Position numbers and translations under genes: made by a program. The notes beneath the pieces are model-generated. The model was not told the origin of the DNA, did no database searches, and worked only from the letters and a program-made list of their open reading frames with translations. Shown in pieces: positions 5,816-63,776 of a stretch of 64,000 bases of DNA (within the stretch, counting starts at the first letter, position 1; every line of letters starts with the position of its first letter). This stretch comes from Phyllobates terribilis. Its lineage: Eukaryota. Location of the stretch: the NCBI RefSeq assembly GCF_046119375.1, contig NW_027362765.1:16120001-16184000 (forward strand), written 5' to 3'.

Positions 5816-7857
5816 AGCGCAGAGAGGGACGACGCTGGAGACGCTGGAGTCCGGACCTGAGCAGCGGCAGCAGGCAAGGAGGGAGGTGAGTATTGGATTT
5901 TTTTTTTTTTTTTTTATGTATGGAGGCATGGGACATAATATTAGGGGTGACATCCTGCATGTGGCATTATATGGGGGGGGGGTGACATCCTGAATGGGGC
6001 ATTATATGGGGGGGTGACATGCTGCATGGGGCATTATATGGGGGGTGACATCCAGCATGGGGCATTATATGGGGGGGGGGTGACATCCTGAATGGGGCAT
6101 TATAAAGACAGGGGAGTGATATCCTGCATGGGTCATTATATGGGGGGGGGGGTGACACCCTGAATGGGGCATTATATGGGGGGGGGGTGGCATCCTGAAT
6201 GGGGCATTATAAAGACAGGGGAGTGATATCCTGCATGGGTCATTATATGGGGGGGGGGGTGACATCCTGAATGGGGCATTATATGGGGGGTGACATGCTG
6301 CATTATATGGGGGGGTGACATCCTGCATGGGGCATTATAAAGACAGGGGAGTGATATCCTGCATGGGTCATTACATGGGGGGGGTGACATCCTGAATGGG
6401 GCATTATATGGGGGGGTGACATGCTGCATTATATGGGGGGTGACATCCAGCATGGGGCATTATATGGGGGGGTAACATCCTGAATGGGGCATTATAAAGA
6501 CAGGGAAGTGATATCCTGCATGGGTCACTATATGGGGGGGGGGGTGACATCCTGAATGGGGCATTATATGGGGGGGGGTGACATCCTGAATGGGGCATTA
6601 TAAAGACAGGGGAGTGATATCCTGCATTGGTCATTATATGGGGGGGTGACATCCTGAATGGGGCATTATATGGGGGGTGACATCCTGAATGGGGCATTTT
6701 AAAGACAGGGGAGTGATATCTTGCATGGGGCATTATATGGTGGGAGAAAGGGAAATCCTGCATGGGGCATTATATGGTGGGAGAAAGGGAAATCCTGCAT
6801 GGGGCATAATAAGGGGGGGAACAGCCTGCATAGGGCATTATAAGGGGGAAACAGCCTGCCTATTGAGGACCTATGCTGCCTATTGGGGACATTTACCTGC
6901 CTATTGGGGACATTTACTTGCCTATTGGGGACATTTACCTGCCTATTGGGGACCTATGCTACCTATTTGGGACATTTACCTGCCTATTTGGGACATTTAC
7001 CTGCCTATTGGGGACCTATGCTGCCTATTGGGAACATTTACCTGCCTATTGGGGACATTTACTTGCCTATTAGGAACCTATGCTGCCTATTGGGGATATT
7101 TACCTGCCTATTGGGGACCTATGCTGCCTATTTGGGACATTTACCTGCCTATTGGGGACATTTACCTGCCTATTGGGGACCTATGCTGCCTATTGGGTAC
7201 ATTTACCTGCCTATTGGGGACCTATGCTGCCTACTGGGGACATTTACCTGCCTATTGGGGATATTTACCTGCCTATTGAGGACCTATGCTGCCTATTGGG
7301 GACATTTACCGGACCTATGCTGCCTATTGGGTACAGTTATAAATACAATTGAGCCAAACTCTATGGTAAATCTTAAACATTGTCCTGTATATACAGGGTA
7401 CTCCTACTTAAATACATAACCTATAAAGACATGGAGTATAACCCCCAGAAAGAAGTATGGAGTAGTACTAGATGGTATAAAAATTGAAAGCTTTATTAAA
7501 TACAAATATTAAAATCGAAAAAATATTGAAAGTTAACAGGTCACTAGGGGTGAAAAACACAAAGACAGGGCGGCAATTGTGTACAGAGATACACAAGGGG
7601 TCATCTGGCAACACTTAGTCAGAGATTGTACTCTCATGCATATGTGACTAGCCCCATAAAGTAGGGGGCACACAGATAATAAATCCAAATGACAGTGTAT
7701 ACAGTCAACAGAATACAGGTGGCAAGGAATCCACAAATGTGTAAGTTCAATGACGATTCCAACCCTTCTTACATGCATACAAAGCAAATATGGATAATAT
7801 CTACATCATAACAGATGGCTCACCCATGTGTCAAATAACCTCGTATGCCGCGCTGGG

Positions 7858-7895
7858 GCCCCGACGCGCGTTTCGCATATAGCTTCCTCGGGGGG
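7858..7895 (-). ncRNA. Minimal type I hammerhead-like motif in the PLE pLTR, copy 1
   Basis: CCC-CCGAGGA-A-GC-UAUAU-GC-GAA-ACGCGCGU-C-GGGG: palindromic stem III and a GUC cleavage triplet; U4 is replaced by C. Confidence 0.7.
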
Positions 7896-8535
7896 CTGTG
7901 GTTTTACACGTGGACCGCCATCATTATATACCCCACTTCCCTACCCAACAGGTGTACACGCCGATAATCACGGCGCATGCGCGATGACCTCCGCCCCCTC
8001 CGCCGCGTCACTTCCGGCTAATTCCCAGCGGAAGTGTGGGCGGGAACAATGCGTTCCATTGACGTCAATGGCCCACACTTCCGCCATACGGAAGCCTTAA
8101 GGACGCAGTCGGACGGGGACAAGCTCGCGCATGCGTCACACGGCGGCAGCCATATTGGGTAAGGGAGAAAGGATGGGCAGCCATACATGGGACAGGTAAC
8201 AACGCACCAGGAAGACAATCAACCATAAAACATTGCATAAATAAAGGTTTTCACAATTAATTGCAATATACACAAAATCTACCAAGAAAGTATCATTCCT
8301 TCAGCAAGCGTTATGGTTAACAATATGCAAATATAGATGTCTGAGGAGTCCTCCAGTATGTGTTGTTCACAGATATATGCGAAGAAAGACTTGTCCATAT
8401 ACAATAACAAAGGGCTGATCCCAAATAGTTCCGAGAGGTATTCCAGAAATGAAATAAATGATGACGTAAATGCTAAAAAAGAACAAAAGAATTAAAATCC
8501 ACATAATAAAAACAGAAGGAGAAGGGCATATGGAA

Positions 8536-11500
8536 CTAGAGGTAGGGAGCAAAACTGTTCTGTTCATTTAGACCCCTAGGGGTCATCGTGTCCAGTATAG
8601 CTATCCAGCGACACTCCAGCTGCGCCAAAATGCGTTTGTGATTGCCACCCCTAATCCCGAGGTGTACTCGGTCAATGCCTCTAAATTGGAGGCATACGGG
8701 GTCGCAGTTATGGCACAGTCTGAAGTGTCGCGGGATCGTCTTAAGCAGTGATACATCGGGGGCCTCTCGAGCCGCCAAAACGTCTCTGATGTGTTCCCTT
8801 ACTCGGATCCGAAACTCTCTCGATGTGAGCCCCACATAGCTCTAATTGCACGGACATGTGGCCATATACACAATATATGTGGTACTACAAGAGATATATT
8901 GTGTAATTTTAAAGTTTTTTAGGCCATCTGCAGAAGTAAATGATGTTGTGCGAACTATGTTTCTACAAGCCAGACAGGACCCGCAGGGAAAGCAACCCCA
9001 TCTTTGTTTCCCACCCCCAAATAGGGTGGGGGTGGGAGCGACATAGTGGCTTCTAACTAGCGAGTCCTTTAGACTCTTGCCCCTCCTAGCCGTCATCAAG
9101 GGTTTATCAGGTAAAATTTTGTTCAGTGTAGGTTCAGTTTTGAGGATGGACCAATGTTTGGACAGAATCTCTCGTATTTCCCGCCAACGACTATTATAAG
9201 TAGATATAAATCTAATGGGGGGATCCCTCTCAGGTTGTTTTATGGGATTAATTAGGAGAAGATCCCGTGGAGTTTTCCTAGCACGTTTATAGCCTTTCTT
9301 AATACTACGTGTGCTGTACCCACGATCTCGGAATCTCTGGTCAAGGTCCCGAGCCTGAGCCTCAAATGTTACGTCAGAGAAACAAATGCGTTTCATCCTC
9401 AAATAATGTCCAACAGGAATGGCCCGAATTGTTGAAGGTGTATGGGCTGATGTTGCATGTAACAATGAGTTGACTGCTGTCTCCTTACGATAAACATCAG
9501 TCTCTACCATGCCATTCTGTTGGACAATGATCTTAATGTCCAGAAAGTCAATCTGGTTGTGATCAAACTTATAGGTAAGCCTAATGTTCCTATCGTTAAG
9601 ATTTAAAGAGGCAATGAAGTCATGAAGCTCAGACTCGGGACCCTGCCAGATGATGAAGACATCATCTATATATCTGTACCAGCACTGCACATGGGAGGCG
9701 GCGCCGGCTCCATCCCCGAAAATCTCCCTCTCCCAGAAACTGAGAAAGAGATTAGCGCAGGACGGAGCACACGCCGCGCCCATCGCAGTGCCGCGTTTTT
9801 GAAGGAAGAATCTGTCTTTGAATGTGAAAAAATTATGGGTAAGTATGAAATTCAATAATTCCAAGATCAAGGCACAAAGTGAGGCAGCTAAATCACTGGC
9901 TGCAAGGAAAACTCCACGGCTCGTAGTCCATCCTCATGTCCTATGCTCGTATACAGTGACTCCACGTCAACCGCCACCAAAATCATATCCGTGTCAAGAT
10001 ATAGGCCATCAATCTTCCTAAGGACGTCCCCTGTGTCTCTGACATAGGAGGGCAGCGTTTCAACCAACGGATGGAGGTAATGTTCAATGAATTTACAAAT
10101 AGGATCGCACAGCCCTCCAATGCCAGAGACAATGGGAAGTCCCGGGGGTTCTAGAGGATTCTTGTGAATTTTGGGTAGCAGGTAAAGAGTAGGAACTATT
10201 GGGCACTTAATAAGAAGACCATCAAAGATTTTTTTAGGAATAATTCCCTGCTCATATGCCCGCTCCAAAATGTCAAGAAGTACAGCCGAAAAGGCTGCCA
10301 AAGGATTACTGGATAGAGGAATATAAGTTGTCCGGTCCCGGAGTTGCCTAAAGGCCTCTCTCTCATATTTTGTGACTGGCCAGACCACAACGTTCCCTCC
10401 CTTGTCCGCAGGCTTAAACACCACATCTTTAATAGATTGTAGTTCCCTAAGTGCTTTTCGCTGTCCCGGGGTAAGATTATCATTCCTAAACCTCCCAGAT
10501 AGATTCCTAAGATCATCACTGACAAGTTTGTTAAAGATTTCAACTTGTGGGCAGAGGGAGAAGGGAGGGAAGGTGGTGGATCTGGCCAGGACAGAGGTGG
10601 GAAAAGTACCTGTAGGGACCGGAACACTCTCTCTCTCCAGTTCCTCCAAAGTAGACAAGGCTTCCCTTTCCATAGTCGTGTCCAAATAATCATGACAGGT
10701 AGGTTTGGTGTGCAGTTTCCGCAGAATCACTTTCCTGAGGAATAATTGTAGATCTTTTAACGCTGGGAAAAAATTGTAATTGTTAGTAGGTACAAAGGTT
10801 AGGCCCAACGATAGAACCTCTATCTGATCTTCAGACAGTGTGTGGGTAGAGAGATTGATTACCTCTAGGTTATTAAATTTAGATTTTTTCTCCATGGATT
10901 GTGGTGGGGTTAACTTCCGTTTAGAGTTGCTTTTCCCCTTCCATTGTCCACAGTATCTCTCACCCGACAAATTTACACTGTTCGTGCCAGCCTGATTACT
11001 TTTAGATGGCTCTTCATCCATAGATGACAGGGATGAGACAGAGCTGCCCCGATTCCCCAACACTGACCTTGTAGGACTCTTTTTCCTTCTCCATCTATAG
11101 ACCTGCTTTTGGTTAAAGTCCGAAAGGTCTCTTTGATACTTTCTAGTTTTAGAAGTCACTATGTCTCTCTCCCATTTGAGAAATTCGTTATCCAAGTCCA
11201 AATTGAATTTACTCAGTGCTTCTGGGGTTAATTTAGTAGACAGAGAGTCCTGGAGCTGAGTAATCTCCACCTCAATTATGTGTAGAGACGACTCATTAGA
11301 TTTAATCAGAAGTTCCATATAGCCCCTTGAGCAGGTGGATGATAGGTCCTCCCATTGTTTTTTCAATGCATCGTCATCAAACTCAAATGCTGGAAAAACC
11401 TGGACACGAAGACCCCTAGGGATCAACCCCCTAGCCACATAACGTTCCAAGAAAGCCTTATTCCACCATAGGCGGATTTTTTTTATTATATAGGTCTTTC

Positions 11501-11613
11501 AAATTGGATATCAAGTTGTCATTCTCCCTTGTATTTAAAACCACAGTGGATTCCTCCCCAAAGACCTTATTTAACTGAGTGAGCCATGTCTGCTCACGCT
11601 TTTTGTGATCCAT
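8536..11613 (-). pseudogene. PLE polyprotein (~1025 codons): N-terminal domain, reverse transcriptase, Cys linker, GIY-YIG endonuclease; two homopolymer frameshifts and one stop
   Basis: GTAMG and RYIDD RT motifs; CFPCGSCLAC linker; YIVYMATCPC..YVG..R..EH and ECRWI..L.T..PRGLN. Frameshifts near 11480 and 9905; TAG at 8842-8844. Confidence 0.9.
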
Positions 11614-12177
11614 GTGTTCGGATCCAGAAGCTGTGAAAACACACAGTATTAGCCAAACATAAATACAATTGAGCCGAACTTTATGGTAAATCTTAAACAT
11701 TGTCCTGTATATACAGGGTACTCCTACTTAAATACATAACCTATAAAGACATGGAATATAACCCCCAGAAAGAAGTATGGAGTAGTACTAGATGGTATTA
11801 AAATTGAAAGCTTTATTAAATACAAATATTAAAATCGAAAAAATATTGAAAGTTAACAGGTCACTAGGGGTGAAAAGCACAAAGACAGGGCGGCAATTGT
11901 GTACAGAGATACACAGGGGGTCATCTGGCAACACTTAGTCAGAGATTGTACTCTCATGCATATGTGACTAGCCCCAAAAAGTAGGGGGCACACAGATAAT
12001 AAATCCAAATGACAGTGTATACAGTCAACAGAATACAGGTGGCAAGGAATCCACAAATGTGTAAGTTCAATGACGATTCCAACCCTTCTTACATGCATAC
12101 AAAGCAAATATGGATAATATCTACATCATAACAGATGGCTCACTCATGTGTCAAATAACCTCGTATGCCGCGCTGAG

Positions 12178-12216
12178 GCCCCGACGCACGTTTCGCGTAT
12201 AGCTTCCTCGGGGGGG
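12178..12216 (-). ncRNA. Hammerhead-like motif, PLE copy 2
   Basis: Same motif; stem III reads ACGUGCGU. Confidence 0.65.
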
Positions 12217-12852
12217 CTGTGGTTTTACAAGTGGACCGCCATCATTATATACCCCACTTCCCTACCCTACAGGTGTACACGCCGATAATCACGGCGCATG
12301 CGCGATGACCTCCGCCCCCTCCGCCGCATCATTTCCGGCTAATTCCCAGCGGAAGTGTGGGCGGGAACAATGCGTTCCACTGACGTCAATGGCCCACACT
12401 TCCGCCATACGAAAGCCTTAAGGACGCAGTCGGACGGGGACAATCTCGCGCAAGCGTCACACGGCGGCAGCCATATTGGGTAAGGGAGAAAGGATGGGCA
12501 GCCATACATGGGACAGGTAACAACGCACCAGGAAGACAATCAACCATAAAACATTGCATAAAGGTTTTCACAATTAATTGCAATATACACAAAATCTACC
12601 AAGAAAGTATCATTCCTTCAGCAAGCGTTATGGTTAACAATATGCAAATATAGATGTCTGAGGAGTCCTCCAGTATGTGTTGTTCACAGATATATGCGAA
12701 GAAAGACTTGTCCATATACAATAACAAAGGGCTGATCCCAAATAGGTCCGAGAGGTATTCCAGAAATGAAATAAATGATGACGTAAATGCTAAAAAAGAA
12801 CAAAAGAATTAAAATCCACATAATAAAAACAGAAGGAGAAGGGCATATGGAA

Positions 12853-14847
12853 CTAGAGGTAGGGAGCAAAACTGTTCTGTTCATTTAGACCCCTAGGGGT
12901 CATCGTGTCCAGTATAGCTATCCAGCGACACTCCAGCTGCGCCAAAATGCGTTTGTGATTGCCACCCCTAATCCCGAGGTGTACTCGGTCAATGCCTCTA
13001 AATTGGAGGCATACGGGGTCGCAGTTATGGCACAGCCTGAAGTGTCGCGGGATCGTCTTAAGCAGTGATACATCGGGGGCCTCTCGAGCCGCCAAAACGT
13101 CTCTGATGTGTTCCCTTACTCGGATCCGAAACTCTCTCGATGTGAGTCCCACATAGCTCAACTTGCATGGACATGTGGCCATATACACAATATATGTGAT
13201 ACTACAAGAAATATATTGTGTAATTTTAAAGTTTTTTAGGCCATCTGCAGAAGTAAATGATGTTGTGCGAACTATGTTTCTACAAGCCAGACAGGACCCG
13301 CAGGGAAAGCAACCCCATCTTTGTTTCCCACCCCCAAATAGGGTGGGGGTGGGAGCGACATAGTGGCTTCTAACTAGCGAGTCCTTTAGACTCTTGCCCC
13401 TCCTAGCCGTCATCAAGGGTTTATCAGGTAAAATTTTGTTCAGTGTAGGTTCAGTTTTGAGGATGGACCAATGTTTGGACAGAATCTCTCGTATTTCCCG
13501 CCAACGACTATTATAAGTAGATATAAATCTAATGGGGGGATCCCTCTCAGGTTGTTTTATGGGATTAATTAGGAGAAGATCCCATGGAGTTTTCCTAGCA
13601 CGTTTATAGCCTCTCTTAATACTACGTGTGCTGTACCCACGATCTCGGAATCTCTGGTCAAGGTCCCGAGCCTGAGCCTCAAATGTTACGTCAGAGGAAC
13701 AAATGCGTTTCATCCTCAAATATTGTCCAACAGGAATGGCCCGAATTGTTGAAGGTGTATGGGCTGATGTTGCATGTAACAATGAGTTGACCGCTGTCTC
13801 CTTACGATAAACATCAGTCTCTACCATGCCATTCTGTTGGACAATGATCTTAATGTCCAGAAAGTCAATCTGGTTGTGATCAAACTTATAGGTAAGCCTA
13901 ATGTTCCTATCGTTAAGATTTAAAGAAGCAATGAAGTCATGAAGCTCAGACTCGGGACCCTGCCAGATGATGAAGACATCATCTATATATCTGTACCAGC
14001 ACTGCACATGGGAGGCGGCGCCGGCTCCATCCCCGAAAATCTCCCTCTCCCAGAAACCGAGAAAGAGATTAGCGTAGGACAGAGCACACGCCGCGCCCAT
14101 CGCAGTGCCGCGTTTTTGAAGGAAGAATCTGTCTTTGAATGTGAAAAAATTATGGGTAAGTATGAAATTCAATAATTCCAAGATCAAGGCACAAAGTGAG
14201 GCAGCTAAATCACTGGCTGCAAGGAAAAACTCCACGGCTCGTAGTCCATCCTCATGTCCTATGCTCGTATACAGTGACTCCACGTTAACCGCCACCAAAA
14301 TCATATCCGTGTCAAGATATAGGCCATCAATCTTCCTAAGGACGTCCCCTGTGTCTCTGACATAGGAGGGCAGCGTTTCAACCAACGGATGGAGGTAATG
14401 TTCAATGAATTTACAAATAGGATCGCACAGCCCTCCAATGCCAGAGACAATGGGACGTCCCGGGGGTTCTAGAGGATTCTTGTGAATTTTGGGTAGCAGG
14501 TAAAGAGTAGGAACTATTGGGCACTTAATAAGAAGACCATCAAAGATTTTTTAGGAATAATTCCCTGCTCATATGCCCGCTCCAAAATGTCAAGAAGTAC
14601 AGCCGAAAAGGCTGCCAGAGGATTACTGGATAGAGGAATATAAGTTGTCCAGTCCCGGAGTAGCCTAAAGGCCTCTCTCTCATATTTTGTGACTGGCCAG
14701 ACCACAACGTTCCCTCCCTTGTCCGCAGGCTTAAACACCACATCTTTAATAGATTGTAGTTCCCTAAGTGCTTATCGCTGTCCCGGGGTAAGATTATCAT
14801 TCCTAAACCTCCCAGATAGATTCCTAAGATCATCACTGACAAGTTTG
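12853..14847 (-). pseudogene. PLE copy 2, 5'-truncated RT plus GIY-YIG (510-aa open segment at 12853-14385)
   Basis: The ORF track shows an uninterrupted RT-to-endonuclease frame. Confidence 0.88.
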
Positions 14848-16321
14848 ATTGATGGCCTATATCTTGACACGGATATGATTTTGGTGGCGGTTGACGTGGA
14901 GTCACTGTATACGAGCATAGGACATGAGGATGGACTACGAGCCGTGGAGTTTTTCCCTGCAGCCAGTGATTTAGCTGCCTCACTTTGTGCCTTGATCTTG
15001 AAATTATTGAATTTCATACTTACCCATAATTTTTTCACATTCAAAGACAGATTCTTCCTTCAAAAACGCGGCACTGCGATGGGCGCGGCGTGTGCTCTGT
15101 CCTACGCTAATCTCTTTCTCGGTTTCTGGGAGAGGGAGATTTTCGGGGATGGAGCCGGCGCCGCCTCCCATGTGCAGTGCTGGTACAGATATATAGATGA
15201 TGTCTTCATCATCTGGCAGGGTCCCGAGTCTGAGCTTCATGACTTCATTGCCTCTTTAAATCTTAACGATAGGAACATTAGGCTTACCTATAAGTTTGAT
15301 CACAACCAGATTGACTTTCTGGACATTAAGATCATTGTCCAACAGAATGGCATGGTAGAGACTGATGTTTATCGTAAGGAGACAGCGGTCAACTCATTTT
15401 TACATGCAACATCAGCCCATACACCTTCAACAATTCGGGCCATTCCTGTTGGACAATATTTGAGGATGAAACGGTTCCTCTGACGTAACATTTGAGGCTC
15501 AGGCTCGGGACCTTGACCAGAGATTCCGAGATCGTGGGTACAGCACACGTAGTATTAAGAGAGGCTATAAACGTGCTAGGAAAACTCCACGGGATCTTCT
15601 CCTAATTAATCCCATAAAACAACCTGAGAGGGATCCCCCCATTAGATTTATATCTACTTATAATAGTCGTTGGCGGGAAATACGAGAGATTCTGTCCAAA
15701 CATTGGTCCATCCTCAAAACTGAACCTACACTGAACAAAATTTTACCTGATAAACCCTTGATGACGGCTAGGAGGGGCAAGAGTCTAAAGGACTCGCTAG
15801 TTAGAAGCCACTATGTCGCTCCCACCCCCACCCTATTTGGGGGTGGGAAACAAAGATGGGGTTGCTTTCCCTGCGGGTCCTGTCTGGCTTGTAGAAACAT
15901 AGTTCGCACAACATCATTTACTTCTGCAGATGGCCTAAAAAACTTTAAAATTACACAATATATTTCTTGTAGTACCACATATATTGTGTATATGGCCACA
16001 TGTCCGTGCAATTTGAGCTATGTGGGACTCACATCGAGAGAGTTTCGGATCCGAGTCAGGGAACACATCAGAGACGTTTTGGCGGCTCGAGAGGCCCCCG
16101 ATGTATCACTGCTTAAGACGATCCCGCGACACTTCAGACTGTGCCATAACTGCGACCCCGTATGCCTCCAATTTAGAGGCATTGACCGAGTACACCTCGG
16201 GATTAGGGGTGGCAATCACAAACGCATTTTGGCGCAGCTGGAGTGTCGCTGGATAGCTATACTGGACACGATGACCCCTAGGGGTCTAAATGAACAGAAC
16301 AGTTTTGCTCCCTACCTCTAG
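14848..16321 (+). pseudogene. PLE copy 3 (inverted), RT plus GIY-YIG with a small deletion near 15470
   Basis: ORFs 14689-15483 and 15758-16321 match copies 1 and 2 on the opposite strand. Confidence 0.88.
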
Positions 16322-16699
16322 TTCCATATGCCCTTCTCCTTCTGTTTTTATTATGTGGATTTTAATTCTTTTGTTCTTTTTTAGCATTTACGTCATCATT
16401 TATTTCATTTCTGGAATACCTCTCGGACCTATTTGGGATCAGCCCTTTGTTATTGTATATGGACAAGTCTTTCATCGCATATATCTGTGAACAACACATA
16501 TTGGAGGACTCCTCAGACATCTATATTTGCATATTGTTAACCATAACGCTTGCTGAAGGAATGATACTTTCTTGGTAGATTTTGTGTATATTGCAATTAA
16601 TTGTGAAAACCTTTATTTATGCAATGTTTTATGGTTGATTGTCTTCCTGGTGCGTTGTTACCTGTCCCATGTATGGCTGCCCATCCTTTCTCCCTTACC

Positions 16700-16925
16700 C
16701 AATATGGCTGCCGCCGTGTGACGCATGCGCGAGATTGTCCCCGTCCGACTGCGTCCTTAAGGCTTCCGTATGGCGGAAGTGTGGGCCATTGACGTCAGTG
16801 GAACGCATTGTTCCCGCCCACACTTCCGCTGGGAATTAGCCGGAAATGACGCGGCGGAGGTCATCGCGCATGCGCCGTGACTATCGGCGTGTACACCTGT
16901 AGGGTAGGGAAGTGGGGTATATAAT
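16700..16925 (+). promoter_or_regulatory. CpG-rich Pol II promoter in the PLE pLTR (mirrored on the minus strand at ~7925-8160 and ~12245-12480)
   Basis: YY1-like aatatggctgcc (16701), NRF1-like cgcatgcgc (16722 and 16867), inverted ETS cggaagtg / cacttccg (16774, 16821), CRE tgacgtca (16790) and TATATAA (16918-16924). Confidence 0.55.
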
Positions 16926-16952
16926 GATGGCGGTCCACGTGTAAAACCACAG

Positions 16953-16990
16953 CCCCCCGAGGAAGCTATATGCGAGACGCGCGTCGGGGC
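16953..16990 (+). ncRNA. Hammerhead-like motif, PLE copy 3 (GAAA mutated to GAGA, likely inactive)
   Basis: cccgaggaagctatatgcgagacgcgcgtcgggg. Confidence 0.55.
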
Positions 16991-17473
16991 CTCAGCGCGG
17001 CATATGAGGTTATTTAACACATGGGTGAGCCATCTGTTATGATGTAGATATTATCCATATTTGCTTTGTATGCATGTAAGAAGGGTTGGAATCGTCATTG
17101 AACTTACACATTTGTGGATTCCTTCCCACCTGTATTCTGTTGACTGTATACACTGTCATTTGGATTTATTATCTGTGTGCCCCCTACTTTATGGGGCTAG
17201 TCACATATGCATGAGAGTACAATCTCTGACTAAGTGTTGCCAGATGACCCCCTGTGTATCTCTGTACACAATTGCCGCTCTGTCTTTGTGTTTTTCACCC
17301 CTAGTGACCTGTTAACTTTCAATATTCTTTCAATTTTAATATTTGTATTTAATAAAGCTTTCAATTTTAATACCATTTAGTACTACTCCATACTTCTTTT
17401 TGGGGGTTATACTCCATGTCTTTATAGGTTATCTATTGGGTACAGTTACCTACCTATTGAAATACCGGTTGAT

Positions 17474-18718
17474 TTAACTTTTCTCGTTCTTCATTTTAAA
17501 TATTGTATTTGTTCCAGTATTGTTTTTTTTACTACAAAATAAGATATGTGCAGTGTGCATAGGAATTTGTTCATAGTTTTTTTTAAAAACTATATTCCGG
17601 CCCTCCAATGGTCTGAGGGACCGTGAACTGGCCCCCTGTTTAAAAAGTTTGAGGACCCCTGTTCTAGGTTCTTCAAAGTAGCCACCTTTTGCTTTGATGA
17701 CTGCTTTGCACACTCTTGGCATTCTCTCGATGAGCTTCAAGAGGTAGTCACCAGAAATGGTCTTCCAACAATCTTGAAGGATTTCCCAGAGATGCTTAGC
17801 ACTTGTTGGCCCTTTTGCCTTCACTCTGCGGTCCAGCTCACCCCAAACCATCTCGATTGGGTTCAGGTCTGGTGACTGTGGAGGCCAGGTCATCTGGCAA
17901 AGCACCCCATCACTCTCCTTCTTGGTCAAATAGCCCTTACACAGCCTGGAGGTGTGTTTGGGGTCATTGTCCTGTTGAAAAATAAATGATGGTCCAACTA
18001 AACGCCAACCGGATGGAATAGCATGCCGCTGCAAGATGCTGTGGTAGCCATGCTGGTTCAGTATGCCTTCAATTTTGAATAAATTCCCAATAGTGTCAAC
18101 AGTGTCACCAGCAAAGCACCCCCACACCATCACACCTCCTCCTCCATGCTTCACGGTAGGAACCAGGCATGTAGAGTCCATCCGTTCACCTTTTCTGCGT
18201 CGCACAAAGACACGGTGGTTGGAACCAAAGATCTCAAATTTGGACTCATCAGACCAAAGCACAGATTTCCACTGGTCTAATGTCCATTCGTTGTGTTCTT
18301 TAGCCCAAACAAGTCTCTTCTGCTTGTTGCCTGTCCTTAGCAGTGGTTTCCTAGCAGCTATTTTACCATGAAGGCCTGCTGCACAAAGTCTCCTCTTAAC
18401 AGTTGTTGAAGAGATGTGTCTGCTGCTAGAACTCTGTGTGGCATTGACCTGGTCTCTAATCTGAGCTGCTGTTAACCTGCGATTTCTGAGGCTGGTGACT
18501 TGGATAAACTTATCCTCAGAACCAGAGGTGACTCTTGATCTTCCTTTCCTGGGGCAGTCCTCATGTGAGCCAGTTTCTTTGTAGTGCTTGATGGTTTTTG
18601 CAACTGCACTTGAGGACACTTTCAAAGTTTTCCCAATTTTTAACACTGACTGACCTTCATTTCTTAAAGCAATGATGGCTACTCGTTTTTCTTTACTTAT
18701 CTGCTTTTTTCTTGCCAT
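17474..18718 (-). CDS. Uninterrupted DD38E transposase ORF fused to a ~66-aa tail read from the hAT terminus
   Basis: MARKKQ...WSDESKF...QQDNDPKH...SPDLNPIE...YFEEPR then TGVLKLFKQG...EKS*. It also carries a 3-aa duplication (DTVDTI). Confidence 0.6.
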   Translation of the reverse strand: MARKKQISKEKRVAIIALRNEGQSVLKIGKTLKVSSSAVAKTIKHYKETGSHEDCPRKGRSRVTSGSEDKFIQVTSLRNRRLTAAQIRDQVNATQSSSSRHISSTTVKRRLCAAGLHGKIAARKPLLRTGNKQKRLVWAKEHNEWTLDQWKSVLWSDESKFEIFGSNHRVFVRRRKGERMDSTCLVPTVKHGGGGVMVWGCFAGDTVDTIGNLFKIEGILNQHGYHSILQRHAIPSGWRLVGPSFIFQQDNDPKHTSRLCKGYLTKKESDGVLCQMTWPPQSPDLNPIEMVWGELDRRVKAKGPTSAKHLWEILQDCWKTISGDYLLKLIERMPRVCKAVIKAKGGYFEEPRTGVLKLFKQGASSRSLRPLEGRNIVFKKNYEQIPMHTAHILFCSKKNNTGTNTIFKMKNEKS

Positions 18719-19127
18719 AATACACATTCTAACAGTCTATTCAGTAGGACTATCAGCTGTGTATCCACCAGACTTCTGCACAACACAACTGATGGTCCCA
18801 ACCCCATTTATAAGGCAAGAAATCCCACTTATTAAACCTGACAGGGCACACCTGTGAAGTGAAAACCATTTCCGGTGACTACCTCTTGAAGCTCATCAAG
18901 AGAATGCCAAGAGTGTGCAAAGCAGTCATCAAAGCAAAAGGTGGCTACTTTGAAGAACCTAGAATATAAGACATAATTTCAGTTGTTTCACACTTTTTTG
19001 TTAAGTATATAATTCCACATGTGTTAATTCATAGTTTTGATGCCTTCAGTGTGAATGTACAATTTTCATAGTCATGAAAATACAGAAAAATCTTTAAATG
19101 AGGTTTGTCCAATCTTTTGGTCTGTAC

Positions 19128-19129
<2 letters not shown>
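17662..19129 (-). mobile_element. Tc1 DD38E element, copy 2 (duplicated part)
   Basis: Matches 2874-4344; TIR ends ...ggtctgtactg at 19129. Confidence 0.9.
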
Positions 19130-19182
<53 letters not shown>

Positions 19183-19200
19183 AATATATATACATACATA

Positions 19201-21237
19201 CAGGTGCATCTCACTAAATTAGAACATCATCAAAAATGTATTTCAGTTCTTCAATACAAACAGTGAAACTCATATATTTTATAGAATCAATACAAACAAG
19301 AGTGATCTATTTCAAGTGTTTATTTCCGTTAACGTTGATGATTATGGCTTACAGCCAATGAAAACACAAAAGTCATTATCTCAGTAAATTAGAATACTTT
19401 ATAACAACAGCTTCAAAAATGTTTTTAAAATCTGAAATGTTGGCCTACTGAAATGTATGTTCAGTAAATGCAGTCAATACTTGGTTGGGCTCCTTTTGCA
19501 TCAATTACTGCATCAATGCGGCGTGGCATGAAGGCGATCAGCCTGTGGCACTGCTGAGGTGTTATGGAAGCCCAGGTTGCTTTGATAGCAGCTTTCAGCT
19601 CGTCTGCATTGTTGGGTCTGGTGTCTCTCATCTTCCTCTTGACAATGCCCCATAGATTCTCTATGGGGTTAAGGTCAGGCGAGTTTGCTGGCCAATCAAG
19701 CACAGTGATACTGTTGTTTGTAAACCAGGTATTGGTACTTTTGGCCGTGTGGACAGGTGCCAAGTCCTGATGGAGAATGAAATTTCCATCTCCAAAAAGC
19801 TTGTCGGCAGAGGGAAGCATGAAGTGCTCTAAAATTTCCTGGTAGATCGCTGCGCTGACTTTGGTCTTGATAAAACACAGTGGACCTACACCAGCAGATG
19901 ACATGGCTCCCCAAACCATCACTGATTGTGGAAACTTCACACTAGACCTCAAGCAGCTTGGATTGTGTGCCTCTCTACTCTTCCTCCAGACTCTGGGACC
20001 TTGATTTTCAAATGAAAATTGGAACTCTGGGACCTTGTGGAGTGTGTCAATGACTGCCCTCTGGACATTTGTCAAGTCAGCAATCTTCCCCATGATTGTG
20101 GAGCCTACTGAAACAGACTAAGGGACCTTTTTTGATGCTTAGGAAGCCTTTGCAGGTGTTTTTTGTTAATTATTTTAATTTACTGAGATAATGACTTTTG
20201 TGTTTTCATTGGCTGTAAGCCATAATCATCAACATTAATATAAATAAATCACTCTGTTTGTAATGACTGATATAATATAGGAGTTTCACTTTTTGTATTG
20301 AAGAACTGAAATAAGGCTATGTGCCCATGATGCAGAAATGCTCCGGATTTTTTTTGAGCGTTTCTGCATCTCCTTGGCAGAAAAAACGCATGCGGATTGT
20401 ACATGCGTTTTTCCTGCCAGGGACAAGCGGATGTGAAGCATTCTTCACATGCATTTCCACATGCGGGTTGTCAAGCTCTTTCCAAGCGATTTTAGCATCA
20501 CTTGGAAAGTGCTTGACAACTTGGTCACTCTATATAAATCCATGCAACCGGCATGGATTTATATAGTGTGACCGAAAGAATGGTAAAAAAAAATATTATA
20601 CTTACCTTCCGATGGCCCCCCGGTGTCTTTTTCTGATGCGTCCTAGCTTGCTGGCAGCTCACGGTACACTAAAGGACCTGCCGACGTCAGCGGTCGCGTG
20701 ACCCGTCACATGACTAAATGACGTCATGGCAGGTCCTTGAGTCCACCGCGAGCTGCTGGCAAGCCAGGACGCATCGGTAAAGACACCAGGGGCCATCAGA
20801 AGGTAAGTATAATGTATATTTTTTATTTTATTCTTTTTTTTACAGATACTATGGTACCAGGGTCCGGAGGAGTCTCTTCTTCTCCAAACCCGGGTACCAT
20901 CCTCACATTGAAATGCATGGATTCCGCATGTACAGATGCAGTTATGCGGATTCCATGCGTTCTAATGCAAGTCAATGGCGGCGAAAACGCAGCGCTTCCG
21001 CAAAATAATTGGTAGTGCTGCGGATTGTTCCGCAATGATAATCCGCAGCGGAAATTCCCGCAGCATGTGCACAGCACATGTGGATTATCATTGGGGAACA
21101 TGGCAGGCCTTCTACCAAGCGTTTTTTAAGCGTTTCTGCAGCGGAATTGCCGCTGTGGAAACGCTTAAAAAACGCATAGTGGGCACACAGCCTAAATTAA
21201 CTTTTTGATGATATTCTAATTTAGTGAGATGCACCTG
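19201..21237 (-). mobile_element. Internally deleted Tc1 (DD34E), copy 2, both TIRs present
   Basis: caggtgcatctcactaaattag / ctaatttagtgagatgcacctg with TA flanks; the 210-aa ORF joins the N-terminus directly to the catalytic C-terminal half. Confidence 0.88.
20315..21192. mobile_element. PIF/Harbinger-type MITE inserted in the Tc1 TIR
   Basis: TIR ggctatgtgccca / tgggcacacagcc and 3-bp TSD TAA on both sides. Confidence 0.85.
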
Positions 21238-21830: not shown

Positions 21831-21860
21831 GGGTCAGGAGGGGTTTACAGTGTGGATGTA

Positions 21861-25930: not shown

Positions 25931-25936
25931 ATTTAA

Positions 25937-31027: not shown

Positions 31028-31066
31028 CTAAAAAAGATCCAATTTTAGGTTAAAACATTTCCCACA

Positions 31067-41858: not shown

Positions 41859-41918
<60 letters not shown>

Positions 41919-41920
41919 TA

Positions 41921-43408: not shown

Positions 43409-43497
<89 letters not shown>

Positions 43498-48134: not shown

Positions 48135-48176
<42 letters not shown>

Positions 48177-48270
48177 AAGAGGCAGAAACTGTAATATCAA
48201 AGATCTCATAATTAATTATGAATTCCCTAGATGTTCTTAAAAAAGTTTATATATATATATATTTATTTAT

Positions 48271-54234: not shown

Positions 54235-54419
54235 CAGTGTTTCCCAAACTCCAGTCCTCACGGCCCCACACAGGTCATGTTTTCAGGATTTCTATAGTGC
54301 TGCACAGCTAAGAGAATTACTGATGCCTTGATGATACTTCCACCACCTAGCCAATGCTAAGAAAATGCTGAAAACATCAGCTGTAGGGGTCCGTGAGGAC
54401 TGGAGTTTGGGAAACACTG
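54235..54419. mobile_element. hAT MITE
   Basis: TIR cagtgtttcccaaactccagtcctcacgg and its inverse; perfect TSD gtctagat. Confidence 0.88.
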
Positions 54420-55688: not shown

Positions 55689-55940
55689 ATAGTATTTAAG
55701 GTTGAAGGAAGGCTAAGTCCATCTAGTTCAACCCATAGCCTAACAGGTTGATCCAGAGGAAGGCAAAAAAACCAATGTGGCAAACGCTAAGCTCCACATT
55801 GGGGAAAAAATTCCTTCCTGACTCCACATACGGCAATCAGACTAGTTCCCCGGATCAACGCCCCCATCAAGGAATCTAGTATATGTAACCTGTAATATTA
55901 TATTTTCAAGAAAGGCATCCAGGCCCTTCTTAAATTTTAG
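55689..55940 (-). mobile_element. CR1 LINE 3' end (last ORF2 codons and 3' UTR)
   Basis: Reverse complement reads LKFKKGLDAFLE, continuing the frame from 61891. Confidence 0.8.
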
Positions 55941-58900
55941 ACAATGTGAACTGAGGTCTAAGATGGCAGACATACAAGAAACAGAGGCATGTTCACACTA
56001 GCAAAAAAGAAGCAAGACAAAAATATATCTCATACCCTACCATAATTATATATAAATGTAAAGCAAAGTTGCATAATAAATATAGGGTACTTAGTGAACT
56101 ATTTTTGATCAAAAAAAGTATACAAGCCGTCCCACCAGTGGCAAGGTGACCCTAAATTGGGACGGTACCTATACTGCCTATATTAAAAACCTTACTGTAT
56201 ATCAAAGTTGAAGTAATGCATATAAAAGGGTAGACAAATAGGACCGGGTCCCAACTCCAGACCACCTAGGCCCGTGGTAAGCTACATATATACCAATCAG
56301 CTCAACAAAGGGCATGCCACACCCTTAAATTGCACAGAATGCAAACAAGTCAAAAAACCAGACAATGTGAACTGAGGTCTAAGATGGCAGACATACAAGA
56401 AACAGAGGCATGTTCACACTAGCAAAAAAGAAGCAAGACAAAAATATATCTCATACCCTACCATAATTATATATAAATGTAAAGCAAAGTTGCATAATAA
56501 ATATAGGGTACTTAGTGAACTATTTTTGATCAAAAAAAGTATACAAGCCGTCCCACCAGCGGCAAGGTGACCCTAAATTGGGACGGTACCTATACTGCCT
56601 ATATTAAAAACCTTACTGTATATCAAAGTTGAAGTAATGCATATAAAAGGGTAGACAAATAGGACCGGGTCCCAACTCCAGACCACCTAGGCCCGTGGTA
56701 AGCTACATATATACCAATCAGCTCAACAAAGGGCATGCCACACCCTTAAATTGCACAGAATGCAAACAAGTCAAAAAACCAGACAATGTGAACTGAGGTC
56801 TAAGATGGCAGACATACAAGAAACAGAGGCATGTTCACACTAGCAAAAAAGAAGCAAGACAAAAATATATCTCATACCCTACCATAATTATATATAAATG
56901 TAAAGCAAAGTTGCATAATAAATATAGGGTACTTAGTGAACTATTTTTGATCAAAAAAAGTATACAAGCCGTCCCACCAGCGGCAAGGTGACCCTAAATT
57001 GGGACGGTACCTATACTGCCTATATTAAAAACCTTACTGTATATCAAAGTTGAAGTAATGCATATAAAAGGGTAGACAAATAGGACCGGGTCCCAACTCC
57101 AGACCACCTAGGCCCGTGGTAAGCTACATATATACCAATCAGCTCAACAAAGGGCATGCCACACCCTTAAATTGCACAGAATGCAAACAAGTCAAAAAAC
57201 CAGACAATGTGAACTGAGGTCTAAGATGGCAGACATACAAGAAACAGAGGCATGTTCACACTAGCAAAAAAGAAGCAAGACAAAAATATATCTCATACCC
57301 TACCATAATTATATATAAATGTAAAGCAAAGTTGCATAATAAATATAGGGTACTTAGTGAACTATTTTTGATCAAAAAAAGTATACAAGCCGTCCCACCA
57401 GCGGCAAGGTGACCCTAAATTGGGACGGTACCTATACTGCCTATATTAAAAACCTTACTGTATATCAAAGTTGAAGTAATGCATATAAAAGGGTAGACAA
57501 ATAGGACCGGGTCCCAACTCCAGACCACCTAGGCCCGTGGTAAGCTACATATATACCAATCAGCTCAACAAAGGGCATGCCACACCCTTAAATTGCACAG
57601 AATGCAAACAAGTCAAAAAACCAGACAATGTGAACTGAGGTCTAAGATGGCAGACATACAAGAAACAGAGGCATGTTCACACTAGCAAAAAAGAAGCAAG
57701 ACAAAAATATATCTCATACCCTACCATAATTATATATAAATGTAAAGCAAAGTTGCATAATAAATATAGGGTACTTAGTGAACTATTTTTGATCAAAAAA
57801 AGTATACAAGCCGTCCCACCAGCGGCAAGGTGACCCTAAATTGGGACGGTACCTATACTGCCTATATTAAAAACCTTACTGTATATCAAAGTTGAAGTAA
57901 TGCATATAAAAGGGTAGACAAATAGGACCGGGTCCCAACTCCAGACCACCTAGGCCCGTGGTAAGCTACATATATACCAATCAGCTCAACAAAGGGCATG
58001 CCACACCCTTAAATTGCACAGAATGCAAACAAGTCAAAAAACCAGACAATGTGAACTGAGGTCTAAGATGGCAGACATACAAGAAACAGAGGCATGTTCA
58101 CACTAGCAAAAAAGAAGCAAGACAAAAATATATCTCATACCCTACCATAATTATATATAAATGTAAAGCAAAGTTGCATAATAAATATAGGGTACTTAGT
58201 GAACTATTTTTGATCAAAAAAAGTATACAAGCCGTCCCACCAGCGGCAAGGTGACCCTAAATTGGGACGGTACCTATACTGCCTATATTAAAAACCTTAC
58301 TGTATATCAAAGTTGAAGTAATGCATATAAAAGGGTAGACAAATAGGACCGGGTCCCAACTCCAGACCACCTAGGCCCGTGGTAAGCTACATATATACCA
58401 ATCAGCTCAACAAAGGGCATGCCACACCCTTAAATTGCACAGAATGCAAACAAGTCAAAAAACCAGACAATGTGAACTGAGGTCTAAGATGGCAGACATA
58501 CAAGAAACAGAGGCATGTTCACACTAGCAAAAAAGAAGCAAGACAAAAATATATCTCATACCCTACCATAATTATATATAAATGTAAAGCAAAGTTGCAT
58601 AATAAATATAGGGTACTTAGTGAACTATTTTTGATCAAAAAAAGTATACAAGCCGTCCCACCAGCGGCAAGGTGACCCTAAATTGGGACGGTACCTATAC
58701 TGCCTATATTAAAAACCTTACTGTATATCAAAGTTGAAGTAATGCATATAAAAGGGTAGACAAATAGGACCGGGTCCCAACTCCAGACCACCTAGGCCCG
58801 TGGTAAGCTACATATATACCAATCAGCTCAACAAAGGGCATGCCACACCCTTAAATTGCACAGAATGCAAACAAGTCAAAAAACCAGACAATGTGAACTG

Positions 58901-61876
58901 AGGTCTAAGATGGCAGACATACAAGAAACAGAGGCATGTTCACACTAGCAAAAAAGAAGCAAGACAAAAATATATCTCATACCCCACCATAATTATATAT
59001 AAATGTAAAGCAAAATTGCATAATAAATATAGGGTACTTAGTGAACTATTTTTGATCAAAAAAAGTATACAAGCCGTCCCACCAGCGGCAAGGTGACCCT
59101 AAATTGGGACGGTACCTATACTGCCTATATTAAAAACCTTACTGTATATCAAACCTTAAAGGTTTTTAATATAGGCAGTATAGGTACCGTCCCAATTTAG
59201 GGTCACCTTGCCGCTGGTGGGACGGCTTGTATACTTTTTTTGATCAAAAATAGTTCACTAAGTACCCTATATTTATTATGCAACTTTGCTTTACATTTAT
59301 ATATAATTATGGTAGGGTATGAGATATATTTTTGTCTTGCTTCTTTTTTGCTAGTGTGAACATGCCTCTGTTTCTTGTATGTCTGCCATCTTAGACCTCA
59401 GTTCACATTGTCTGGTTTTTTGACTTGTTTGCATTCTGTGCAATTTAAGGGTGTGGCATGCCCTTTGTTGAGCTGATTGGTATATATGTAGCTTACCACG
59501 GGCCTAGGTGGTCTGGAGTTGGGACCCGGTCCTATTTGTCTACCCTTTTATATGCATTACTTCAACTTTGATATACAGTAAGGTTTTTAATATAGGCAGT
59601 ATAGGTACCGTCCCAATTTAGGGTCACCTTGCCGCTGGTGGGACGGCTTGTATACTTTTTTTGATCAAAAATAGTTCACTAAGTACCCTATATTTATTAT
59701 GCAACTTTGCTTTACATTTATATATAATTATGGTAGGGTATGAGATATATTTTTGTCTTGCTTCTTTTTTGCTAGTGTGAACATGCCTCTGTTTCTTGTA
59801 TGTCTGCCATCTTAGACCTCAGTTCACATTGTCTGGTTTTTTGACTTGTTTGCATTCTGTGCAATTTAAGGGTGTGGCATGCCCTTTGTTGAGCTGATTG
59901 GTATATATGTAGCTTACCACGGGCCTAGGTGGTCTGGAGTTGGGACCCGGTCCTATTTGTCTACCCTTTTATATGCATTACTTCAACTTTGATATACAGT
60001 AAGGTTTTTAATATAGGCAGTATAGGTACCGTCCCAATTTAGGGTCACCTTGCCGCTGGTGGGACGGCTTGTATACTTTTTTTGATCAAAAATAGTTCAC
60101 TAAGTACCCTATATTTATTATGCAACTTTGCTTTACATTTATATATAATTATGGTAGGGTATGAGATATATTTTTGTCTTGCTTCTTTTTTGCTAGTGTG
60201 AACATGCCTCTGTTTCTTGTATGTCTGCCATCTTAGACCTCAGTTCACATTGTCTGGTTTTTTGACTTGTTTGCATTCTGTGCAATTTAAGGGTGTGGCA
60301 TGCCCTTTGTTGAGCTGATTGGTATATATGTAGCTTACCACGGGCCTAGGTGGTCTGGAGTTGGGACCCGGTCCTATTTGTCTACCCTTTTATATGCATT
60401 ACTTCAACTTTGATATACAGTAAGGTTTTTAATATAGGCAGTATAGGTACCGTCCCAATTTAGGGTCACCTTGCCGCTGGTGGGACGGCTTGTATACTTT
60501 TTTTGATCAAAAATAGTTCACTAAGTACCCTATATTTATTATGCAACTTTGCTTTACATTTATATATAATTATGGTAGGGTATGAGATATATTTTTGTCT
60601 TGCTTCTTTTTTGCTAGTGTGAACATGCCTCTGTTTCTTGTATGTCTGCCATCTTAGACCTCAGTTCACATTGTCTGGTTTTTTGACTTGTTTGCATTCT
60701 GTGCAATTTAAGGGTGTGGCATGCCCTTTGTTGAGCTGATTGGTATATATGTAGCTTACCACGGGCCTAGGTGGTCTGGAGTTGGGACCCGGTCCTATTT
60801 GTCTACCCTTTTATATGCATTACTTCAACTTTGATATACAGTAAGGTTTTTAATATAGGCAGTATAGGTACCGTCCCAATTTAGGGTCACCTTGCCGCTG
60901 GTGGGACGGCTTGTATACTTTTTTTGATCAAAAATAGTTCACTAAGTACCCTATATTTATTATGCAACTTTGCTTTACATTTATATATAATTATGGTAGG
61001 GTATGAGATATATTTTTGTCTTGCTTCTTTTTTGCTAGTGTGAACATGCCTCTGTTTCTTGTATGTCTGCCATCTTAGACCTCAGTTCACATTGTCTGGT
61101 TTTTTGACTTGTTTGCATTCTGTGCAATTTAAGGGTGTGGCATGCCCTTTGTTGAGCTGATTGGTATATATGTAGCTTACCACGGGCCTAGGTGGTCTGG
61201 AGTTGGGACCCGGTCCTATTTGTCTACCCTTTTATATGCATTACTTCAACTTTGATATACAGTAAGGTTTTTAATATAGGCAGTATAGGTACCGTCCCAA
61301 TTTAGGGTCACCTTGCCGCTGGTGGGACGGCTTGTATACTTTTTTTGATCAAAAATAGTTCACTAAGTACCCTATATTTATTATGCAACTTTGCTTTACA
61401 TTTATATATAATTATGGTAGGGTATGAGATATACTTTTGTCTTGCTTCTTTTTTGCTAGTGTGAACATGCCTCTGTTTCTTGTATGTCTGCCATCTTAGA
61501 CCTCAGTTCACATTGTCTGGTTTTTTGACTTGTTTGCATTCTGTGCAATTTAAGGGTGTGGCATGCCCTTTGTTGAGCTGATTGGTATATATGTAGCTTA
61601 CCACGGGCCTAGGTGGTCTGGAGTTGGGACCCGGTCCTATTTGTCTACCCTTTTATATGCATTACTTCAACTTTGATATACAGTAAGGTTTTTAATATAG
61701 ACAGTATAGGTACCGTCCCAATTTAGGGTCACCTTGCCGCTGGTGGGACGGCTTGTATACTTTTTTTGATCAAAAATAGTTCACTAAGTACCCTATATTT
61801 ATTATGCAACTTTGCTTTACATTTATATATAATTATGGTAGGGTATGAGATATATTTTTGTCTTGCTTCTTTTTTG
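55941..61876. repeat. 421-bp tandem array arranged as a giant inverted repeat (7.6 copies then 6.5 inverted copies), inserted with a TSD
   Basis: Unit starts at 55941, 56362, 56783, 57204, 57625, 58046, 58467 and 58888; inversion at 59141-59158; cttcttaaattttag at 55926-55940 and 61877-61891. Confidence 0.95.
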
Positions 61877-63776
61877 CTTCTTAAATTTTAGTAGTGAATC
61901 ACTCATTACAACATCATGCGGCAGAGAGTTCCATAGCCTCACTGTTCTTACAGTGAAGAATCGGCGTCTAAGATCATGATTAAACCTTCTTTCCTCCAGA
62001 CGTAGAAGATGCCCCCTTGTCACAGTCTCAGAGTAAAGATCAGTAGAAAGGTTTTTGTACTGTCCCCTCATATATTTGTACATAGTAATAAGATCACCCT
62101 AAGCCTTTGTTTTTCCAAACGAAATAACCCCAAGTGTAATAACCTGTCTTGGCATTGCCGACCCCCATTCCTCTAATAACCTTGGTCGCTCTTCTCTGCA
62201 CCCGCTCTAGTTCAGCTATGTCTTTCTTATACACCGGAGACCAGAAATGTACACAGTATACTAAGTGCGGTCGCACTAGTGACTTGTATAGAGGTAAAAT
62301 TATGTTCTCCTCATGAGCATCTATGCCTCTTTTAATGCATCCCATTATGTTATTTGCATTTGCAGCAGCTGCCTGACACTAGCCACCAAAGGTGAGCTTG
62401 TCGTCCACCAATACACCCAGGTCTTTTTCAGTTACAGTTTTGTCCAGTGCTTTACAATTAAGCACATAATTATACATTTTATTTCCTCTGCCCAAGTGCA
62501 TTACCTTACATTTATCCCCATTAAAGCTCATTTGCCATTTATCAGCCCAAGCTTCTAGTTTACATAGATCCTCCTGTAATATAAAATTGTCCTTCTCTGT
62601 ATTGATTACCCTGCAGAGTTTAGTGTCATCTCCAAATATTGAAATATTACTCTGTATGCCCCCTACAAGGTCATTAATAAATATGTTAGAAAGAAGCGGG
62701 ACCAATACTGACCCTTGTGGTACCCCACTGTTAACTGTGACCCAGTCTGAGTATGTTCCATTAATAACCACCCTTTGTTTCCGATCACTGAGCCAGTTCT
62801 TAACCCACTTGCATATATTTTCCCCTATCCCCATTGTTCTCATTTTATGTATCAACCTTTTCTGTGGAACCGTATCAAAAGCTTTTGAAAAGTCCATATA
62901 CACAACATCCACTGCATTTCCTTGATCCAGTCCGGAACTTACCACTTCATAAAAGCTGATCAGATTAGTTTGACAGGAACGGTCCCTCGTAAACCCATGT
63001 TGATATTGGGTCATGAGGTTATTCTTCTTCAGATACTCTAGTATAGCATCTCTTAGGAAACCCTCCAGGATTTTACTCACAGTAGAGGTTAAGATTACTG
63101 GCCTATAATTTCTAAGTTCAGCGTTTGTCCCCTTTTTGAATATTGGCACCACATTGCTATACGCCAGTCCTGTGGTACAGACCCTGTTATTATGGAATCT
63201 TTAAAGATTAATAATAATGGTCTATCTATGACGTTACTTAATTCCTTCAGTACTCGCGGGTGTATCCCATCCGGGCCCGGGGATTTGTCAACTTTAGTGA
63301 TTTTTAGACGCCGCCGTACTTCCTGCTGGGTTAAGCAAGTGACATTTAATGGAGAATTTTTGTCACCACTGATCATGTTTTCTGTCATGTGACTTTCTTT
63401 TGTAAATACTGTTGAAAAAAAAACCATTTAGCATATTGGCTTTTTCCTCATCCTCATCCACCATTTCACCCAGACTATTTTTAAGGGGGCCAACACTATC
63501 AGTTTTTAGTTTCTTACTATTTATGTAATTAAAGAATATTTTGGGATTATTTTTACTTTCTTTGGCAATGAGTCTCTCAGCCTCAATCTTTGCTGCCTTG
63601 ATTTGGTTTTTACAGAATTTATTTAATTTTCTGTATTTATTTAATGCGTCATCACTACCTACTTGCTTTAGTTCTCTAAATGCTTTCTTTTTGTCACTTA
63701 TTGCACCCCTTACAGCTCTATTTAGCCATAGTGGTTTCCTCCTATTTCTAGCATGTTTATTCCCATAGGGTATATA
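61877..63776 (-). mobile_element. CR1 LINE ORF2 (RT), degraded; cut at its 5' side by a Tc1
   Basis: SPGPDGIHPRVLKEL, NYRPVILTS, DFSKAFD, GVPQGSVL, FGDDTKL and LWNSLP motifs. Confidence 0.92.

Follow-up and report, generated by a model that had tools for sequence, protein, structure and literature searches.

How does a block of non-coding tandem repeats come to stand inside a single short target site duplication (TSD), with tandem units on the left and inverted units on the right? The question is raised by a stretch of 64,000 nucleotides from Phyllobates terribilis (contig NW_027362765.1), hereafter the window, which holds such an array of 421-bp units and also a Penelope-like element (PLE) inserted as direct and inverted partial copies. 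A prediction made from the letters of the window had proposed that the two insertions share one geometry, that this geometry comes from reverse transcription primed at both ends of the cut target, the two complementary DNAs (cDNAs) being joined internally, and that the 421-bp unit depends, as a client, on the reverse transcriptase (RT) and GIY-YIG endonuclease (EN) of a PLE. The geometry proved correct in its particulars. The mechanism fits the anatomy of both loci: for the PLE the evidence for priming at both target ends is good, and for the array such priming is plausible; the client relationship has the likeness of geometry in its favour but, with neither a sequence link nor a ribozyme, is an analogy only. 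The reading that we prefer, to which we give about an even chance, is that both loci are single-event, double-ended, target-primed retro-insertions, and that the array was most likely made by the RT and EN of a PLE acting in trans.

The PLE transposition cycle has been called "still undefined" (PMC8557442): how these elements integrate, and for what reason they leave behind tandem and inverted copies with a tail on one side, are questions acknowledged to be open. Two insertions verified by empty sites provide a concrete footprint (polarity, offsets, microhomologies) that favours priming from both target ends.

Anatomy and empty sites of the two insertions

Both loci have tandem copies on the left and inverted copies on the right, as established by repeat analysis, by the orientation of open reading frames (ORFs) and by the register of the units. 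Their TSDs are of the predicted length, 16 bp for the PLE and 15 bp for the array, and each is backed by an empty site (Table 1).

Table 1. Parts of the PLE insertion and of the 421-bp array, in window positions (UTR, untranslated region)
Feature	Position	Strand	Description	Evidence
Paralogous empty site of PLE	2645-2660		same 16-mer, once, in other copy of ~4.7-kb tandem duplication	
PLE TSD, left copy	7324-7339		16 bp, CTATTGGGTACAGTTA, within 21/41-bp minisatellite	single copy at paralogous empty site
PLE copy A	7340-11658	minus	full 4319-bp unit, 3' end leftward at target junction	tblastn, frog PLE proteins
Hammerhead-like motif, PLE 3' UTR	7857-7897	minus, sense strand	candidate	Hammerhead_1 19 bits, gathering score 34, E 1.6
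PLE copy B	11659-14846	minus	tandem with A, 5'-truncated within ORF	
PLE copy C	14847-17432	plus	inverted, 5'-truncated, 3' end rightward, without terminal 76 nt ("tail")	
PLE TSD, right copy	17433-17448		CTATTGGGTACAGTTA	
Array TSD, left copy	55926-55940		15 bp, CTTCTTAAATTTTAG; final AG also unit positions 1-2	
Array left arm	55941-59153 (start 55939/41)	plus	7.64 units of 421 bp	TRF, repeat analysis
Head-to-head junction	59154-59158		5-nt CCTTA; repeats unit positions 252-256 and forms 7-1-7 palindrome	
Array right arm	59159-61876 (end 61876/78)	minus	6.46 inverted units; unit position 255 at centre, 62-64 at target	
Array TSD, right copy	61877-61891		CTTCTTAAATTTTAG; first CT also complement of unit positions 63-62	

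In the PLE, repeat analysis finds, from 7340 onward, two copies in direct orientation that recur at about 4319 bp, followed by the inverted copy. The two left copies have their ORFs on the minus strand, the right copy on the plus strand, so that both element 3' ends face outward, as had been claimed; tblastn with frog and fish PLE proteins yields matches across all three copies in those orientations. In copy A the 3' UTR takes up about 1.2 kb (7340-8538), and the ORF, at about 8539-11613, is interrupted by one frameshift and one stop. The outer termini are 76 nt apart, exactly the offset first noted: copy C ends at the equivalent of 7416, short of a canonical 3' end that is set independently by the B/A tandem junction and is common to copy A. 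The head-to-head joint of copies B and C has a microhomology of 0-1 nt, and the strand joined to each target 3'-OH is the antisense, or cDNA, strand.

The window also contains a duplicate of the PLE flank, 2645-5815 against 17433-20616, identical at 99.3% over its first 968 bp and with 1.39% mismatch overall. In this duplicate the 16-mer is single and without insert: it is thus a true empty site, and the TSD is proven. The three copies A, B and C differ from one another to the same degree (1.28-1.32% in each pair; 18, 17 and 16 private changes) and, the flanking duplication being 1.39% diverged, this points to one insertion event of moderate age followed by independent decay. The flank belongs to a tandem segmental duplication of about 4.7 kb, 1124-5815 against 5813-7339 plus 17433-20616, with the PLE in the second copy only; it contains a Tc1/mariner copy and two minisatellites of composite structure, with units of 36/107 bp and 21/41/62 bp.

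In the array, one outer terminus is at unit positions 1-3 and the other at 62-64, so that they are 61 nt apart in unit phase, where about 60 had been predicted. Both outer junctions have a 2-nt AG that is ambiguous, or a microhomology, the last two bases of the putative primer being also present in the unit: the left junction reads TTTTAG followed by ACAATG, the right one TTTTTTGC followed by TTCTTAAA. The TSD was verified by aligning public contigs to the left flank together with 1.5 units. Those of the host repeat run from ...TTTTAG straight into TAGTGAATCAC..., which is the sequence from 61892 on, and this uninterrupted passage establishes that the TSD is real. No empty copy of the host repeat lies inside the window, and the empty site from public contigs is one at the level of the family. 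The host (55740-55940 and 61877-62100) is itself a repeat dispersed in very many copies, its summed word depth being 3-9e5 in the DNA contigs of organism A (the sequencing runs consulted are lettered A to E), and it is this abundance that supplied the family-level empty site.

The array is very young. Its 14 units, placed in register, show five differences in 5.9 kb, all of them singleton transitions. All five are in the edge units (L1, L8, R1 and R2 of the two arms), and the interior units are 100% identical. This is a pattern that polishing of a collapsed repeat could give, and inverted structures of the PLE type are known to trouble assemblies (PMC8557442); the palindrome, the unit count or the homogeneity could then be artefacts of assembly or polishing. 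However, the flanks of the array are distinct and unique, its TSD is exact and has an independent empty site, its arms are unequal and its centre is non-trivial; a palindrome due to a missed adapter would mirror the flank too. We consider an artefact highly improbable.

Proposed priming from both ends of the target

Assuming that the two loci arose in the same way, the sequence of events would be as follows. A staggered cut would leave two 3'-OH ends 15-16 nt apart; each would anneal by 0-2 nt (4 of 5 at the PLE right junction) to an RNA template and be extended. The two cDNAs would begin on the outside, at positions separated by 61-76 nt on the template, and be extended inward until their 3' ends were joined head-to-head, each cDNA being the template for the second strand of the other. 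The left cDNA of the PLE, 1.74 units long, would come from a read-through RNA or from an end-to-end template jump. The array would be copied likewise from a repeating RNA, circular or multimeric, drawn from a single minority subfamily within a non-coding repeat of very high abundance; this RNA would be the strand complementary to the top strand of the left arm, the top strand being the cDNA, and the enzyme would most likely be the RT and EN of a PLE in trans.

At the PLE, the inverted arm ends 76 nt from a boundary that is internal to the other arm, and priming at the RNA 3' end predicts such a stop. The antisense strand is continuous with each target 3'-OH, as is expected from target-primed cDNA at both nicks. 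The recurrent "inverted pLTR with or without tail" of the PLE literature (pLTR, pseudo-long terminal repeat) goes in the same direction as priming at the RNA 3' end (PMC3846280, PMC8557442). Of the complex PLE insertions described in these two papers (Evgen'ev & Arkhipova), every feature recurs at 7324-17448: a tandem pLTR, an upstream inverted 5'-truncated copy, a short TSD, a one-sided terminal extension and a micro- or minisatellite target. The published "tail" has 30-40 nt, against 76 nt here. The array matches these insertions in the arrangement of its arms, the length of its TSD and its offset termini, but encodes nothing and has no sequence in common with the PLE.

At the array, each arm goes more than six times round the unit without junction heterogeneity, which points to a template without interruption, either circular or in the form of a multimeric transcript. 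The alleles shared by all 14 units are minority ones in the family: at 56313 and 56350, for instance, the array has C and T, where 66-70% of the genomic word depth is G and A. A single template accounts for this better than gradual growth.

An alternative is suggested by the centre of the array: only one target end would be primed, the 3' end of the cDNA would fold back and copy itself into the inverted arm, and the free end would be joined by microhomology; the RT could still be that of a PLE. The inner ends of the two arms are indeed almost in phase, 13 nt apart (268 against 255), around an asymmetric centre of 18 nt that includes a 7-1-7 palindrome and the CCTTA, which is templated locally. 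At both loci the direct arm is the longer of the two, and palindromes at inverted junctions, along with self-priming, have been proposed for PLEs (PMC3846280). However, neither cDNA 3' end of the array is complementary for self-priming at the observed turning point, and of the four variants in mirrored parts of the arms, none is mirrored. A simple snap-back was rejected for the array, the complementarities that it requires being absent at the centre. Nor does a fold-back explain why the inverted arm of the PLE ends 76 nt short of the internal B/A boundary, and there the inner ends are 514-515 nt apart, an asymmetry of 514 nt, in a centre without palindrome. Double-ended priming fits the PLE better than snap-back, and we judge a fold-back unlikely overall. 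The near-in-phase centre of the array could result from run-off at a common RNA 5' end, from a polymerase-theta-like joining or from a fold-back.

The array could also have originated at the DNA level, either as an extrachromosomal satellite circle, amplified by rolling circle and captured at a staggered break, or as a foldback transposon or a palindromic amplification. In favour are the satellite-like character and extreme abundance of the family, whose summed word depth is about 1e6, and the inverted arms of the insert, which span 2.7 kb and resemble those of foldback elements. However, its outer termini differ, being 61 nt out of phase, and thus leave no terminal inverted repeats for a transposase. 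Neither DNA transposons nor end-joining capture typically leave a 15-bp TSD with 2-nt microhomologies of the primer type, and a bona fide retroelement with the same geometry lies at a distance of 38 kb. An origin of this sort seems to us quite unlikely.

A PLE as the possible agent of the 421-bp family

If both loci are target-primed insertions, the next question is which enzyme made the array, and we begin with what the PLE encodes. Copy B has an uninterrupted stretch of 565 amino acids with an RT, a Cys-rich linker and a GIY-YIG-like EN. It has 393 homologues (best E 7e-265), all of them frog or fish RT/GIY-YIG proteins; the closest, from dendrobatid frogs, are at most 67% identical, and several have RVT_1 and GIY-YIG domains. 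On the ORFs of the window, matches to RVT_1 are sub-threshold, and the RT is assigned to the PLE type through its homologues. Pfam gives no direct GIY-YIG match on the C-terminus of copy B, where the pattern YIVY...YVG..R..H..E..N is visible; the ORF can be aligned over its whole length with P0066, in which residues 557-646 pass PF01541. The linker, CFPCGSCLAC, lies just upstream of the GIY-YIG-like block. A CX2-5CxxC linker upstream of the EN is a feature of Neptune and Nematis elements (PMC8557442), so that it appears reasonable to regard the PLE as a Neptune-type, endonuclease-bearing (EN+) element, the clade name being provisional. The Hammerhead_1 match of Table 1 occurs in copy A only and is below the gathering score; all three copies have CCGAGGA at the presumed CUGANGA box, as read by eye from the alignment of the copies and not from a cmscan alignment. 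The family is young and multi-copy in organism A, where low-coverage DNA contigs contain 60-68% of the 31-mers of this copy.

The 421-bp unit is non-coding: its longest ORF has 39 amino acids, and exact look-ups of its six short ORFs returned no matches. Two units searched against Rfam on both strands give no match at gathering score or at E<=10, and a search of the whole window at gathering score places no ribozyme in the unit. By hand, no CUGANGA of a hammerhead core was found on either strand, and no GAAA on the predicted RNA strand. Comparison of the unit with the window, PLE included (blastn, word size 7), gives only chance matches of at most 20 nt, and a metagenome scan with a 35-nt core of the unit found no match.

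In organism A the unit is extremely abundant, present in thousands of contigs at 90-100% identity. It is a dispersed, non-coding tandem unit within the range of roughly 50-1000 bp given for retrozymes (see below), and the array in the window has a TSD backed by an empty site. Near-identical units are indexed in runs of organisms B to E (82-91% of 31-mers, 99.4-99.7% alike by the k-mer index), which may reflect shared ancestry or recent spread; in organism C the unit is only low-copy, with a word depth of about 26. Around unit positions 26-81 (56384-56439 and 55964-56019) the summed depth of DNA contigs is about two-fold lower, contig depth being a poor measure. This dip falls between the two insertion termini (unit 3-62), and may be a variable region or an under-representation in short insertions.

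Contigs from RNA libraries of organism A contain 73-77% of the words of the unit; since the flanking repeat is equally present, carry-over of DNA or heterogeneous nuclear RNA may account for this. These contigs are without direction. Of the two strands of the unit, the predicted template is the more stable when folded, at -120 kcal/mol (z -3.3); its complement reaches -88 kcal/mol (z -1.9). The modelled difference is suggestive only, in favour of that strand as template.

These properties recall the metazoan non-LTR retrozymes of the newt satellite-2 type (PMC7229834; bioRxiv 10.64898/2026.07.22.740005), which like the array consist of non-coding units of a few hundred base pairs, are present at high copy in dispersed blocks with TSDs longer than 4 bp, and occur in amphibians alongside PLEs. 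It has been proposed that these tandem units are clients of PLEs, derived from pLTRs, and that they are copied from circular or multimeric RNA by the PLE RT (PMC7229834; 10.64898/2026.07.22.740005). The type I hammerhead that defines them is, however, absent from the 421-bp unit, as are other Rfam ribozymes, and the unit has no similarity to the pLTR of the window PLE. That PLEs mobilise tandem non-coding units is thus already published, in the form of these hammerhead-bearing retrozymes (PMC7229834; 10.64898/2026.07.22.740005); what is new is a ribozyme-less family and an explicit two-armed footprint. In the retrozyme and PLE literature that we searched, we found no description of a head-to-head, two-armed architecture inside one TSD.

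In favour of a PLE as the enzyme are the shared architecture, the TSDs of 15 and 16 bp, the tail-less ends, the presence of a young, multi-copy PLE in the same organism and the published proposal on tandem retrozymes. Several points weigh on the other side. The comparison is between one locus of each kind, and an offset of 61 nt has by itself a chance of about 29% on a circle of 421 nt. The centres of the two insertions are unlike, with inner ends 13 nt apart in the array (p ~0.06 if independent) against about 515 nt in the PLE, and the two target sites have no clear shared consensus. The unit has no similarity to the window PLE by blastn and, as it is without a hammerhead, the sole published cis-link between PLEs and tandem clients is missing; trans-mobilisation by PLEs in rotifers relied on pLTRs in cis (PMC3846280). 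The k-mer index, which served to look for co-occurrence, places the unit in organisms B to E, and the PLE family in A and, faintly, in B but in no other, a weak point given that the runs are low-coverage contigs. Finally, a run of RNA depleted of ribosomal RNA, from organism C, has 0 reads on the unit. All this considered, we regard the dependence of the 421-bp family on a PLE as reasonable but unproven.

An ATTGT near the priming sites of both the PLE and the array was also considered as a shared motif; its offsets differ, and it was judged to be due to chance.

The RT and EN of a LINE (long interspersed nuclear element), L1-like or other non-LTR, could instead have moved a multimeric 421-nt transcript in trans by twin priming, in which case the PLE would be irrelevant. 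Twin priming of L1 was reportedly described by Ostertag and Kazazian in 2001. The classical marks of this process are a TSD of about 15 bp and inversions whose 3' ends point outward; it also shares with our loci the presumed priming by both target 3' ends and an internal joining by microhomology. The target of the array is, moreover, AT-rich (...AAATTTTAG). Against a LINE is the lack of poly(A), of an A-rich or of a microsatellite tail at either end of the array, where the original prediction had pointed to such tails as hallmarks of L1 or CR1. In addition, the arms are not consecutive segments of an RNA: they overlap completely in template content, each going several times round the unit. The nicks are at TTTTAG/TA and AAGAAG/GG, not at TTTT/AA, and the endonuclease would be of another type if a PLE is responsible. 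A LINE as the agent appears very unlikely.

It is tempting to go one step further, and to conjecture that a ribozyme-free circular or multimeric RNA of 421 nt is a parasite of the PLE RT and GIY-YIG EN, and that symmetric insertion from two ends is the general mechanism of PLE integration; both staggered 3' ends of the target would be extended repeatedly round templates of one kind, after which each cDNA would template the second strand of the other. This extended conjecture is tentative, and we would sooner doubt than accept it. If it were true, hammerheads and pLTR sequences would be dispensable for PLE parasitism. Dependence of the 421-bp family on a PLE would, for its part, extend the concept of retrozyme to units without ribozymes, and explain how satellite-like arrays are seeded in one step in large amphibian genomes.

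Other repeats of the window

Besides the two insertions, the window contains a transposon of the Tc1/mariner type at 17662-18964, with further copies at 2874-4176 and 41949-43242; the three are 96-99% alike, with terminal inverted repeats of 104 bp and an ORF of 417 amino acids (HTH_Tnp_Tc3_2 and DDE_3). A GC-rich minisatellite of 30-bp units at 21860-24055 (to about 24530) has 73 copies, 67% GC and a strong G skew, and grades into degenerate variants of 16-21 bp. An older tandem repeat of 389 bp at 27023-27947 has 2.4 copies, 77% alike, with no Rfam match at gathering score; an inverted segment related to it lies 7 kb off, at 34785-36062. At 31048-32089, an array with a period of 84 bp has 12.4 copies, and its minus strand reads as C2H2 zinc-finger repeats.

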